Source: Octopus bimaculoides (Eukaryota). From it: a stretch of 64,000 nucleotides of DNA. Under the pieces are notes generated by a model. That model saw only the letters and a list, made by a program, of their open reading frames with translations. It was not told the DNA's origin and made no database searches. Position 1 is the stretch's first letter, and every line of letters starts with the position of its first letter. This document shows positions 44,639 to 51,791 of this stretch, in pieces. Location: the NCBI RefSeq assembly GCF_001194135.2, contig NC_069000.1, forward strand, positions 47,123,466 through 47,187,465, written 5' to 3'. Position numbers and translations under genes: made by a program.

Positions 44639-45218
44639 ATGGCTGACACGGTAAATGAGAATGCCATCGACATTTCAGAAAGCGATTCTGTCCAGCAGTG
44701 CAATGAAGACCCCTTAAACTCCTCAAAGGAACTTGTTATTACGATCCAATCTCCAGACAAATTGAATTCCTTGACATCTGATTATTCGGATGCTGAGAGA
44801 GGTTCCAACATTGTTCTGGAAAACCAGGAGATGACATCCTCCAACAACTGTTCCCCGGATCCTAAAGGTAAACTCATTATTACGATGCCTTCTCCAACCT
44901 CATCACAAATGTCAAGCGGAACCGAAACCATTCAATTGGAAATCTCCAATGGATCATCAATAGATCAGAACTCCCCTACCATGGAAATGGACCAGTCTAA
45001 TATCGGATACTGTTTAGTGTGCAATGATCTTGGATCGGGCTATCACTACTCGGCATTTTCTTGCGAGGGGTGTAAAGGATTCTTTAAACGGACTGTCCAG
45101 AAGAATTTGATTTACAAGTGCAAAGACAGTGGAAACTGCATCATCAACAAATTCACGAGAAACAGCTGCCAACATTGTCGCTTCCAACGCTGTCTGCAAG
45201 TTGGTATGAAAAGAGACG
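44639..45218 (+). CDS. Nuclear receptor coding exon 1 (A/B region plus complete DBD)
   Basis: Long pyrimidine tract and CAG acceptor at 44623 lie 15 nt before the ATG, which implies an upstream non-coding exon. Donor G|GTAAGT at 45219. Confidence 0.95.
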
Positions 45219-47316
45219 GTAAGTGGAATATGTTCTCTTAGACACTTCTGAGTCTACTTTGATTCTTTTGCAGAGTCTATCGTTGGGCTGTGTCCATGCT
45301 GGGGCACACCCATCGAAGTTGTCATTAATCATATCAACTCAACTTGTAGTCTATTATAGATTAGCCTTACGAGTGGAAACTGAAAGAAGCCCATTGTGTC
45401 AAGATATATGTTTATTTATATGCATTGTGCATGTGTGTCTCCTTGTCTTGACATCACATGAGGGTTGTAAACGAGCCTCACCGTCATACAAGTGGTGGTG
45501 TTCATTTCCAGTGTTCTGTAGAAAGTTTTCTAAGTGTGGGGCAATATTACTCTTCTTGGAAACAGGTGAAGATTGGCAACAGGAAGGGTGTCCAACTGAC
45601 CCATGCCAGCCTGGGGAAATGGACATTAAAACAATGATGATGGTTACACTTATTCTATTATCAACTTTTGAAACTTGAAAGACAAAATGGATCCGGCTGC
45701 GATCTAACCCTGTAACTTCCTGCAGTAATTGTATCCTGCAAATATCGCCTATAATAATCGAGGTGCCTCTTTTATGTGTCATGAAAGGTACTCCGTTAAC
45801 ATAGTCTTTATTTCTGACTTTTCATATAATCAGCAGTGGTACCACACAGAAGTGTACCCCATTTATGCACCCTCTGTATCTTGATCCCTATGCAGAAGGG
45901 ATCTCCCCACAGAACTCTACCCTATCCTCTATATTTGACGTCTTCTGGGCCCTATTTTCTCTCTGCCAGTTGCTCAACAGAAGTGACTCGGACACCAGGG
46001 TTGGCTCTTCGCATCAAACATTATAGAATGGCATCTAACAGTGAAAGAATAGTTGACAGGTTTAGAAAGAGACACATGGAACACCGACCACACTGGCGCT
46101 AGATGGCTCGTCTTGTTAACGAGAAGAGAGAGAGAAACATGTGACAGTCCAGTGCCATTGGTACTATCCTGTTGCGTTGGAGTAAGATTAACCACAAATT
46201 TTTGACTCAACAAATAAGCAAACACACCAAACACGTTTTGTGGGAAAATATTACAATAAACAGGTGATTTATTGACCTTGATAGCTTTTGTTGTGGCGGC
46301 GATTTGGTGCTGACCCCCACCCCCAGAAGTGGTGGTGGAGAGGCAGCACTAGTAACAATGACAATCCCTTCATTGTCCGTTGGTTTCCTTCCTTTTTTTC
46401 TTTTTTTTGTGATTGTCCTTGAAAATCATGTTTTCGCTGCTGTTGTTGTTGTTATTGTAAATGTTGTTTTTCTGGTTGCTATAGTTGTTGTTGTTGTTGC
46501 AGCTGGTTGATGTTAAGAGTAATCCACTTAACTCCCACCCCCACCCTGAAGGTCAGTGAGTGCAGCGTAAATTTGTCAGAAAAGCAGGATGTGGAGCAGT
46601 TCACTTTGTAAAAAAGCCTGGGAAAGTCATGAACACCTCAACATTACGCTGTTAGATCTGCTGCATTACATCCTCAACAGAGATCATCATCATTGTCATT
46701 AATTCAATGTTAATTGATTGTATTTTCGCAAATCTCATTTAAAAAAAAAATCACAGAAACAAAACCAGCAGGTTCCTCCAAACTGGTTGTCGTTGGCCGT
46801 TTTCTCACGTTCTGGGCCACAACCCATTGAAGGGTTTCAATGTCAGGAAGTGGCAATGGGCGCCATTCTCAAGCAGGATATCGATGCAAACACTTCTGAA
46901 GAACTCTGTGTCTTGCAACAAGAATACCTTTTGCAATTTCTGCAAAAAGTACAAGAGAAGGGTCACAATTTCATGGAAAACCATTTTGAACTTAATGCTT
47001 GCATCTCATAAGGCGGGGTGGGGGGTGGCAGAATCTTTACCATTCTGGGTGAAATGCTTAGTGGCATTTTGTCTGTCTTCACATTCTGAGTTCAAATTCC
47101 ACTGGAGTTGACTTTGCCTTTCATCCTTTCAGGGTCAATAAATTAAGTACCAGTTGCGTACTGGGATCAATCTAATTGACTGAACCCCTCCCCAAAAATT
47201 TCAGGCCTTGTGCCTAGAGTAGAAAAGAAAGAAAAAAAAAAATGCCTGCATATCAGACAAAAAGGCTTAGTGGCATTTCCTTTGGTTCTTTACATTCTGG
47301 GTTCAAATCTTGCTGA

Positions 47317-50300: not shown

Positions 50301-51791
50301 TCTAAATACTATGACTGTTTTATGAGTGGTCTTAATGACCACCAGGATCAGTCTTCAGTTTATTGCGTAGGAATTGTCCTGGTATATCATTTGTCCTATG
50401 GCACTCCTAGCAAAGACCTGCCATGCTTGAGACTAACCAGTCAAGACATGAAAATGGATCCAGGCCTCACCTGCCAAGATTGTCATTGTAACAAAGAAAC
50501 CCTAACCAAATTACAAAGTGACCCTTTAAAATTCCACTCAGGCTCCTTTCTTGTAATATTCCCATTTAATTATTTTCCTTTCTCTTTTACTTATTGCCAC
50601 AGATCAATGGGAATGGACAATGTGATAAAGTTTGCTGAAGGTTTGCTCGTTCCAATCAACTACGCTACCAACATGGGTTGGGGCAATGAACTCATCAATG
50701 CATCTGTTGAGTTCTCCCTCTGTCTCAAGAGTATTCATCTTGACCACTCAGAATTTTGTATTCTCAATGCTCTCGTCTTAACATATCCAGGTGAGTAGTC
50801 ACACCCAAATGTTGCAAACATTGGGTTTCTTTTTTATTTCTTTTTCTCTTACTAACATTATTTACCTGGATTGAAATACCCAGCCATTTACTGGAGAAAT
50901 CCTTTTGGCCAGCCACTCTTCCTGGTCACTAGTTTAATGTCTCCTTTTCCAAGCTCACATGAGTTTCGTGGAATTCAGAGAGGCAGACTTTTTGTGGTCA
51001 AAAACCTTCCCTGTTGCCATTCCTCACCTGTTTCTGACAATTATCTTGTGATGTCAAGACAAGAAGACCAAACGTGTGTGTGTATGATGGGCTTCTTTCA
51101 GTTTCCATCTACCAAATCCTCTCTCTAGGCTTGTATCAGCTAAGGGTTATAGTCAAAGGTGCCAAACAGTTTGGTTTTGTGAAATTTACATGATTGGGAA
51201 AGCAAACTTCTGGCCCAAACAGCCATGCTTGTGTCTTTAATTAAACTCAAAGGGTTTGTAACAGTTTTGAGCAAACCGCAGCCCACGGGGCTTTCCGAAT
51301 GACCTGTCTAATGAAAAATGAAATGACTTTGAATTTTTGTCTTTTAGCAGTATGGCTTACCTGATGATGATGATGAACCTTGTCTCATGCAGCCTGCTTC
51401 TTGTCAAAGGTTGCTTCTGCTTAGATTATAATCTAACAAAGAATTCATTCCACACACACACACACACACACCTGTGCCATGTAATATATAACAAATCTTG
51501 TTTCTTTTTCTCTTGATTTCTTTTTGGTCATCCTTGCTTTCTCTCTCTGCTGTAGATGCCTCAGGTGTACAAGACAAACAAAAGGTTGCTGCCATGCAGA
51601 CGAGAATCCTCGACACACTGCGACGCTACGTCTCCAAGAAATACTCCAGTGACCTCCAGCGTTATGGCAAGATGCTGCTACGTCTGCCAGCCCTTCGCAC
51701 CCTCAGCGCCAAAGCTGCCGAACGTTTCCTCTCACTGACCCTGGAGGGCAGTTCCCACATTAATGAACTTGTGTCCCAAATGATCAGCTGA
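44639..51791 (+). CDS. Orphan nuclear hormone receptor, 459 aa, RXR-related, probable NR7/NR8-type: join(44639..45218,48008..48190,48895..49002,50023..50107,50603..50790,51556..51791)
   Basis: Two C4 zinc fingers ([30 protein letters not shown]...[30 protein letters not shown]), [21 protein letters not shown] signature WAKKVPGFRDL...DQTALL and helix 10 LLRLPALR. All five introns are GT-AG with consistent phases (1,1,1,2,1). Total 1380 nt, ending in TGA. Confidence 0.95.
47011..47228 (+). mobile_element. tRNA-derived SINE with Meta-like central domain
   Basis: B-box-like GAGTTCAAATTCC, then GCCTTTCATCCTTTCAGGGTCAATAAATTAAGTACCAG. Copies at about 1080-1280 (-), 15965-16190 (-), 17480-17640 (-) and 52140-52380 (+). 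Confidence 0.7.
48008..48190 (+). CDS. Nuclear receptor coding exon 2 (CTE and hinge with Gly9)
   Basis: TTTTTAG|CT gives GCT (Ala), continuing GMKRD-AVREDR. Donor G|GTGAGG at 48191; phase 1 fits the next exon. Confidence 0.9.
48180..48283 (+). repeat. Three tandem copies of AAAGACAGGAG|GTGAGGGTTAGGG at the exon 2 donor; G-quadruplex-prone
   Basis: Identical donor context with GT at 48191, 48238 and 48267. Confidence 0.85.
48895..49002 (+). CDS. Nuclear receptor coding exon 3 (LBD helix 3)
   Basis: CTTTATAG|AA; encodes [36 protein letters not shown]; donor G|GTAAC at 49003. Not listed in the ORF track. Confidence 0.92.
50023..50107 (+). CDS. Nuclear receptor coding exon 4 (LBD helices 4-5)
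   Basis: CCCTGCCAG|GA; encodes [28 protein letters not shown]; donor AG|GTAGG at 50108. Confidence 0.92.
50603..50790 (+). CDS. Nuclear receptor coding exon 5 (LBD helices 6-8)
   Basis: GCCACAG|A; encodes [18 protein letters not shown]...[17 protein letters not shown]; donor G|GTGAGT at 50791. Confidence 0.93.
51556..51791 (+). CDS. Nuclear receptor coding exon 6 (LBD helices 9-12, stop)
   Basis: GCTGTAG|AT gives YPD; encodes [10 protein letters not shown]...[26 protein letters not shown]...[10 protein letters not shown]-stop. Confidence 0.93.

Follow-up and report, generated by a model that had tools for sequence, protein, structure and literature searches.

Introduction

The nuclear receptor (NR) subfamily known as NR7 or NR8 is, of the ancient nuclear-receptor subfamilies, the only one that vertebrates, arthropods and nematodes lack, and it has been proposed as a link between the receptors that homodimerise and those that form heterodimers with RXR. 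The NR7 protein of amphioxus has a monomeric ligand-binding domain (LBD), forms DNA-dependent homodimers and heterodimers with RXR on direct repeats, and activates independently of ligand (Beinsteiner et al. 2022, PMC9535869). It was unresponsive to the classical NR ligands tried, namely steroids, thyroid hormones and fatty acids as well as retinoids, and recognition of AGGTCA by NR7 was inferred by the same authors from the same E/K/R residues in the P-box (PMC9535869). The closest named and published orthologue in a mollusc is NR8A1 of the oyster Crassostrea (Magallana) gigas (AKG49571.1; Huang et al. 2015). NR7 of Beinsteiner et al. (2022) and NR8 of Huang et al. (2015) denote one and the same family: Wu and LoVerde (2023) equate the former with the receptor previously called NR8 (PMC10497141), and a 2021 review uses 'NR7/8' (PMC7827873). 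The name needs care, as the label NR7 has also been applied to receptors with two DNA-binding domains (DBDs) (PMC10497141).

Here we describe a member of this family from Octopus bimaculoides. The gene lies at positions 44639-51791 of a 64,000-nucleotide stretch of contig NC_069000.1 (RefSeq assembly GCF_001194135.2, positions 47,123,466 to 47,187,465, forward strand), referred to below as the window. A first-pass annotation, made from the DNA letters and their open reading frames (ORFs), had read this segment as a complete orphan nuclear receptor, probably of the NR7/NR8 subfamily and matching amphioxus NR7 and oyster NR8A1, and our analysis supports that interpretation. The locus is very probably the O. 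bimaculoides orthologue of NR7 (NR8A, 'NR7/8'), an intact, single-copy-looking gene of six exons that encodes a transcription factor of 459 residues. The placement of this protein in NR7 is already known and is not new, because Table S1 of Beinsteiner et al. (2022; BMC Biol 20:217; PMC9535869) names exactly this accession, as 'Octopus bimaculoides uniprot:A0A0L8HDR4 NR7'.

Results

Database identity of the Octopus protein

Along its full length the product of the gene has 100% identity to database protein P0001, which is XP_014773144.1 in RefSeq and A0A0L8HDR4 (A0A0L8HDR4_OCTBM) in UniProt. The RefSeq entry is named 'retinoic acid receptor RXR-alpha-B [Octopus bimaculoides]', which is the kind of RXR-like label that the first-pass annotation had expected of automatic naming, and the UniProt name is 'Uncharacterized protein'. 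The 90% cluster of A0A0L8HDR4 also holds the orthologues from O. sinensis (460 residues) and O. vulgaris. Similarity hits include M. gigas 'Nuclear receptor 8', at 53% identity, and Paracentrotus lividus 'Nuclear hormone receptor 7', while most other orthologues, which come from molluscs, annelids, brachiopods, nemerteans, hemichordates and echinoderms, have received automatic labels such as 'RXR-alpha-B-like', 'RXR-gamma' or 'steroid hormone receptor ERR2-like'. We conclude that 'RXR-alpha-B' in RefSeq is a misannotation, taken from the best hit among vertebrates, and that the pattern is family-wide. A search of one literature library for a paper underlying the GenBank record of a Doryteuthis pealeii protein, titled 'mollusc nuclear receptor [Doryteuthis pealeii]', found none there.

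Family placement

Comparison of the LBD alone with the Protein Data Bank (PDB) gave 190.6 bits over the whole domain to 7Q71, the LBD of amphioxus NR7, against 109.9 bits for the best RXR and 99.1 bits for ERR-gamma. A HMMER scan of 1.84 billion representatives (50% identity) returned NR7-type proteins from 468 bits down to 285 bits (Priapulus), followed by a gap to scores of 222 bits or less. When an NR7 profile built without any mollusc was scored on the Octopus core, it reached 460.8 bits, compared with 304.0 for NR1/4, 290.3 for NR5 with its cnidarian relatives, 275.4 for NR3, 258.9 for RXR and 207.3 for COUP; the DBD and the LBD taken separately each score best on the NR7 profile.

Bootstrapped neighbour-joining (NJ) trees were computed from 212 aligned proteins found in the searches, the columns being Octopus residues 124-205 and 237-459, which cover the DBD, the C-terminal extension (CTE) and the LBD. 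The Octopus protein groups with five sequences in 200/200 replicates, two of the five being labelled as cephalopod (Argonauta and Doryteuthis), and this cephalopod group nests in a mollusc and then a lophotrochozoan grouping within an NR7 clade of 102 sequences. The same clade holds the 'Nuclear receptor 8' of Crassostrea and the NR7 proteins of Paracentrotus and Branchiostoma belcheri, and it lies outside RXR, ERR/ER, NR5 and NR1/NR4. It is separated from 106 references with a bootstrap of 271/300 (276/300 for the LBD alone). With the neighbouring groups labelled by the source names of their representatives, the order of sister groups is NR1+NR4 (NR4A2, RAR, NR1D/E75, TR), NR3 (ERR/ER, P-box EACKA/EGCKA), NR5 (ESCKG) with cnidarians, RXR with two vertebrate RXR-gammas, and COUP, with HNF4 at the root. 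This order matches the published maximum-likelihood (ML) tree, in which accession A0A0L8HDR4 lies in NR7 (approximate likelihood-ratio test 0.98) and NR7 is sister to NR1+NR4 (Beinsteiner et al. 2022, PMC9535869).

Signature residues and the C-terminal extension

The first-pass annotation had singled out a CTE unlike those of RXR, ERR and GCNF, and the difference holds. From the 102-sequence clade, rather than from the literature, we derived the signature AVREDR[ST]PGG[KR]H, which directly follows GMKR[ED]; each position is held by 87-100 of the 102 members, and the Octopus protein conforms to it. The RXR group reads AVQEER and then has a gap, the consensus of the NR3/ERR group is GVRLDRVRGGRQ, and the extension in the GCNF crystal chain 5KRB is AIREDGMPGGRN; a CTE of the NR7 type is absent from the RXR, NR1/4 and NR3 groups. 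Four sequences that are cnidarian or unlabelled (P0115, P0119, P0120 and P0161) have the same 12-residue NR7-type CTE as Octopus, yet they group with NR5-like proteins in the NJ tree, probably as a long-branch effect. The cnidarian Dendronephthya is entered as NR7 in Beinsteiner et al. 2022 (PMC9535869).

Residues described for the amphioxus structure were mapped onto the Octopus protein through an alignment with 7Q71. Octopus keeps Trp345, the equivalent of the pocket plug Trp276 in the loop between helices 6 and 7 (H6-H7), which is Trp in 93 of the 102 sequences, as well as Phe329 (Phe260 in amphioxus). It also keeps Tyr380 (Tyr311; NR7 proteins have Tyr or Phe here, whereas RXR and NR3 have Asn), Ala383 (Ala314, so that the class II Arg is absent; Arg in NR1/4), the pair Glu369-Arg417 (Glu300-Arg347), Pro426 in helix 10 and Arg429 (Arg359).

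Intron positions

Five NR7 genes (Octopus, oyster, B. belcheri, Strongylocentrotus purpuratus and Priapulus) and the RXR-gamma gene of sturgeon were threaded with their own proteins. In all five NR7 genes the DBD is uninterrupted by introns, and four introns are common to them, at GMKR[DE]/AVREDR (phase 1; a slash marks the intron), in the hinge immediately ahead of helix 1 (phase 1), at LRLSY/R (phase 2) and at YP/DA (phase 1). Octopus, oyster and Priapulus have a further intron at WAKKVP/GF (phase 1) that amphioxus and sea urchin lack. In the RXR-gamma gene, by contrast, the first zinc finger is split by an intron (CGDRSS/GKHYG) and the LBD introns are at LLRA/GWNEL and IFD/RVL, and this gene shares with NR7 only the intron that follows the DBD and that at P/DA. 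That both zinc fingers lie in one exon together with the A/B region, as the first-pass annotation had remarked, is correct, and it is a trait of the family and no peculiarity of Octopus. An extra intron of amphioxus NR7, at DSR/RHAKILLR, has the position and phase of the RXR intron QPG/RFAKLLLR.

Gene structure

Assembly of the exons from open stretches and junction sequences between 43 and 53.5 kb of the window gave a coding sequence of six exons on the forward strand with five GT-AG introns and an ORF of 1380 nucleotides, that is, 459 codons and TGA (Table 1). The limits of the segment as first annotated are exactly those of the gene, 44639 being the first base of the ATG and 51791 the last base of the TGA stop, and the ATG is immediately preceded by a stop in the same frame. 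The same six exons were obtained independently by exact threading of protein P0001 on the window. The three motifs that had been listed for the protein, CEGCKG, the 15-residue CTE and LLRLPALR, were all found on the forward strand at the positions in Table 1. A Pfam search with the product identified zf-C4 (E=2.2e-29) and Hormone_recep (residues 269-439, E=2.7e-27), both far beyond chance. The observation is a real one: the gene is intact and correctly read.

In the AlphaFold model, the DBD and the LBD are predicted with confidence (predicted local distance difference test, pLDDT, above 90) and the LBD has the canonical fold, while residues 1-116 of the A/B region (pLDDT below 50) and residues 203-228 of the hinge are disordered. 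The part of the hinge predicted as disordered contains a short coding triplet repeat of nine glycine codons (48091-48117; GGA GGT GGT GGT GGT GGT GGC GGC GGC). A Foldseek comparison of the model with the PDB does not separate the NR families, multi-domain complexes of RXR, LXR and HNF4 being on top; among the entries that consist of an LBD only, 7Q71 is best by E-value and ERR-gamma is best by TM-score.

Table 1. Features of the O. bimaculoides NR7 gene, in positions of the window
Feature	Position	Strand	Pfam
Exon 1: ATG, A/B region (residues 1-123, predicted disordered) and whole DBD with both zinc fingers; ends in phase 1 after GMKRD	44639-45218	+	
zf-C4 DBD, residues 124-192; D-box KDSGN; pLDDT 95-97	45008-45214	+	PF00105
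P-box CEGCKG, of the type that reads AGGTCA half-sites	45062-45079	+	
Exon 2: CTE, basic stretch, hinge with Gly9 run, helix 1	48008-48190	+	
CTE, 15 residues; Ala codon split by the exon 1/2 junction, its first base being 45218	48007-48051 (exon 2 part 48008-48051)	+	
Exon 3: helix 3 including charge-clamp Lys287 (WAKKVP); followed by a phase 1 intron	48895-49002	+	
Exon 4: helices 4-5; ends at the phase 2 intron LRLSY/R	50023-50107	+	
Exon 5: beta-sheet, helices 6-8; Trp345 (codon 50679-50681), Ser353 (50703-50705)	50603-50790	+	
Exon 6: helices 9-12, TGA; LLRLPALR at 51675-51698 (Pro426, Arg429); activation function 2 (AF-2) helix ELVSQMIS; Gln456 codon CAA at 51777-51779	51556-51791	+	

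Comparison with the amphioxus and oyster receptors

With NR7 of Branchiostoma lanceolatum, the source of 7Q71, the Octopus protein has in common the EGCKG P-box, the extension AVREDR.PGG and all of the mapped residues listed above, and its gene has in common with that of amphioxus the uninterrupted DBD and three intron positions in the hinge and LBD. Identity to the B. belcheri protein is 43% in the LBD and 72% in the DBD. The two differ in that Glu386, Trp284, Asp241, Arg218 and Phe361 of amphioxus are Gln, Ser, Glu, Lys and Leu in Octopus, and in that Octopus has a longer A/B region, a Gly9 run in its hinge and the additional WAKKVP/GF intron and is without the helix-10 intron of amphioxus. 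In addition, AlphaFold predicts a continuous H10-H11 for Octopus, in contrast to the collapsed conformation of the 7Q71 crystal. Oyster NR8A1 is closer: 53% of all positions are identical, and the figure rises to 76% within the DBD and 61% within the LBD. All five Octopus introns are found in the oyster gene at identical positions and phases, and the extension is the same (AVREDRSPGGKH), whereas in oyster a further intron interrupts the A/B region and the product keeps the Glu of helix 12 (LVLEMIN). The receptor is expressed maternally and early in both oyster and amphioxus.

Other features of the window

Long ORFs elsewhere in the 64-kb window gave no Pfam hit, and no Rfam family at gathering score and no tRNA were detected there. 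Two ORFs at 38335-39325 (+) contain FVDLEKAFDRV and RWYGHVLRR...GRQRKMW, which we take to resemble motifs of non-LTR retrotransposons, from the reverse transcriptase and the C-terminal part, a likeness left unconfirmed by Pfam, which gave no significant hit to these ORFs. The window has ten assembly gaps, runs of N amounting to 2314 bases (912-921, 2093-2881, 4849-5308, 13176-13185, 18776-19464, 34224-34233, 34676-34766, 37307-37316, 37948-37957 and 52735-52969), which are often flanked by microsatellites of the TA/CA type, translating as YIYIYI or HTHTHT.

Discussion

The gene structure, the domain content and the membership of NR7 are direct results of this analysis. By analogy with amphioxus, and going by the residues that are conserved, the EGCKG P-box would read AGGTCA half-sites, and the protein would be monomeric off DNA. 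Only on DNA would it be expected to homodimerise, on direct repeats with zero spacing (DR0) and on other direct repeats, and to form a DNA-dependent heterodimer with RXR, for which DR0 and direct repeats with a spacing of four (DR4) would be preferred. Activation would take place without ligand, the conserved Trp of the H6-H7 loop (Trp345) being predicted to fill the pocket.

Several observations weigh against assigning the locus to NR7, or against carrying the amphioxus properties over to it. The tree of the DBD alone fails to resolve the family (bootstrap 50/300), and the PDB scores of this domain are flat, at 100-110 bits for RAR, RXR, TR4, ERR, NR5A2 (101 bits) and GCNF. Our tree is a distance-based NJ tree rather than an ML tree, and is without full-length NR6; a search of a large protein database with the GCNF DBD (5KRB) gave only fragments of 142 residues or less, which contain neither LBD nor extension, so that NR6 is absent from it. 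Support for the clade drops to 206/300 with Priapulus, Dimorphilus, P0237 and a coral inside it, and in the full 212-sequence tree with these four present the smallest clade with the four named NR7/NR8 proteins is recovered in 6/200 replicates. This last value arises from the four unstable long-branch sequences and not from conflict with other families, their removal giving the 271/300 reported above. Were the RefSeq name right, the protein would be a true RXR (NR2B) paralogue, a receptor of the 9-cis-retinoid type and a general heterodimer partner. The top PDB matches of the whole protein are indeed full-length RXR-alpha chains (201 bits), CEGCKG and the helix-10 sequence LLRLPALR are identical in RXR/USP, introns follow GMKRE and interrupt P/DA in both, and many orthologues bear RXR names; it is from this family that the database name was taken. 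However, the LBD prefers NR7 by the scores given above and is only 30-31% identical to that of RXR, the profiles agree, and P0114 and P0118, which are vertebrate RXRs, belong to a clade far from NR7, with separating nodes at 185/200 and 148/200. RXR moreover has Val or Leu for the pocket Trp, Asn for Tyr380, AVQEER without the PGGKH extension, a first zinc finger split by an intron and LBD introns at different places, and the Pfam search of the Octopus protein found no Nuc_recep-AF1 domain. With LBD scores, profiles, tree, CTE and introns all against it, we regard identity as RXR as refuted and attach next to no probability to it. No more credible is a receptor like ERR (NR3B), NR5 or GCNF (NR6), binding extended half-sites through its CTE, although 'steroid hormone receptor ERR2-like' is the label of some orthologues, the CTE core DR.PGG[KR] resembles DRVRGGR of ERR, LDRTRGGR of NR5 (in sequences of the ESCKG type) and EDGMPGGR of GCNF (NR6A1), and LBDs of ERR-gamma superpose best on the AlphaFold model (TMt 0.87-0.89). 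DR0, on which amphioxus NR7 homodimerises, is the response element of GCNF too. Against such a receptor, the P-box is EGCKG and neither EACKA (ERR) nor ESCKG (NR5), the profiles of NR3 and NR5 with cnidarians score far below that of NR7, and the NJ tree separates both groups from NR7. GCNF, compared at the level of the DBD only, scores 99.6 bits (5KRB), below the DBDs of RXR, RAR and ERR, with 4 of 12 positions different in its extension. In the published ML tree, whose sampling extends to NR5 and NR6, A0A0L8HDR4 falls in NR7 (PMC9535869). That the locus is a decaying or non-functional copy is most improbable, given its intact ORF, its five GT-AG introns and its pattern of constraint. Identity to O. 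sinensis is 97-99% in every region, and across cephalopods the domains are far better kept than the A/B region, identity to Argonauta and Doryteuthis being 88-93% in the DBD, 80-90% in the LBD and only 31-44% in the A/B region. Just three changes at conserved family positions are specific to the cephalopod group, Gln456 and, in the DBD, V139A and K184R, and related sequences come from short Logan contigs that resemble transcript assemblies.

The remaining objections concern the function of an NR7 orthologue rather than its identity. What is said above on DNA-dependent dimerisation, constitutive activity and lack of a ligand is an extrapolation from amphioxus NR7, whose LBD has 43% identity to that of Octopus. 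At the charge-clamp position of helix 12 each of the six members of the cephalopod group has Gln (Gln456 in Octopus), and 94 of the 96 other clade members have Glu; in amphioxus NR7, mutation of both R218 and E386, the charge clamp, to Ala lowered binding of a coactivator peptide (Beinsteiner et al. 2022, PMC9535869). The replacement may weaken or alter the recruitment of coactivators through LXXLL motifs in cephalopods. Trp284, one of three residues reported to fill the amphioxus pocket, occurs in one of the 102 clade members, amphioxus itself, the position being Thr in 71 and Ser in 21, including Ser353 of Octopus. The pocket, which measures 112 cubic angstroms in 7Q71, may be less full in Octopus, to judge from the sequence, and because Trp284 is confined to amphioxus among these members, the conclusion that a ligand would find no space may not carry over to other phyla. 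It is thus possible to envisage an NR7 orthologue that, in cephalopods or in lophotrochozoans generally, is regulated by a ligand or acts mainly as a repressor or silent partner, and is no constitutive activator of the amphioxus type. We consider this unlikely, though by no means negligible. The main plug, Trp345, is conserved, as is Phe329; Gln is a conservative replacement that would still be able to cap the peptide backbone; and the rest of AF-2 (ELVSQMIS) and the Lys of helix 3 are intact. Furthermore, no ligand is known for any NR7, and the amphioxus receptor ignored the classical ligands tested. The charge-clamp Glu is a feature of the family and Trp284 is not. The Gln in helix 12, which is restricted to cephalopods, is a departure at the level of the lineage and gives no ground for excluding the protein from NR7. 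The second pocket Trp of 7Q71, the single solved NR7 structure, is missing from the cephalopod sequences as it is from most NR7 proteins outside amphioxus.

To the evolutionary story of NR7 the Octopus gene adds nothing beyond what has been published, and its practical value lies in annotation. Names such as RXR or ERR2 for this receptor would mislead counts of RXR genes in cephalopods and work there on retinoid signalling or on endocrine disruption. The Glu-to-Gln change in the cephalopod AF-2 and the restriction of Trp284 to amphioxus are small points that are possibly new. There is a minor chance that the cephalopod NR7 has a changed coupling to coregulators and is not a closed, ligand-free receptor; if that were so, the model of a 'constitutive orphan' drawn from amphioxus would fail for cephalopods.

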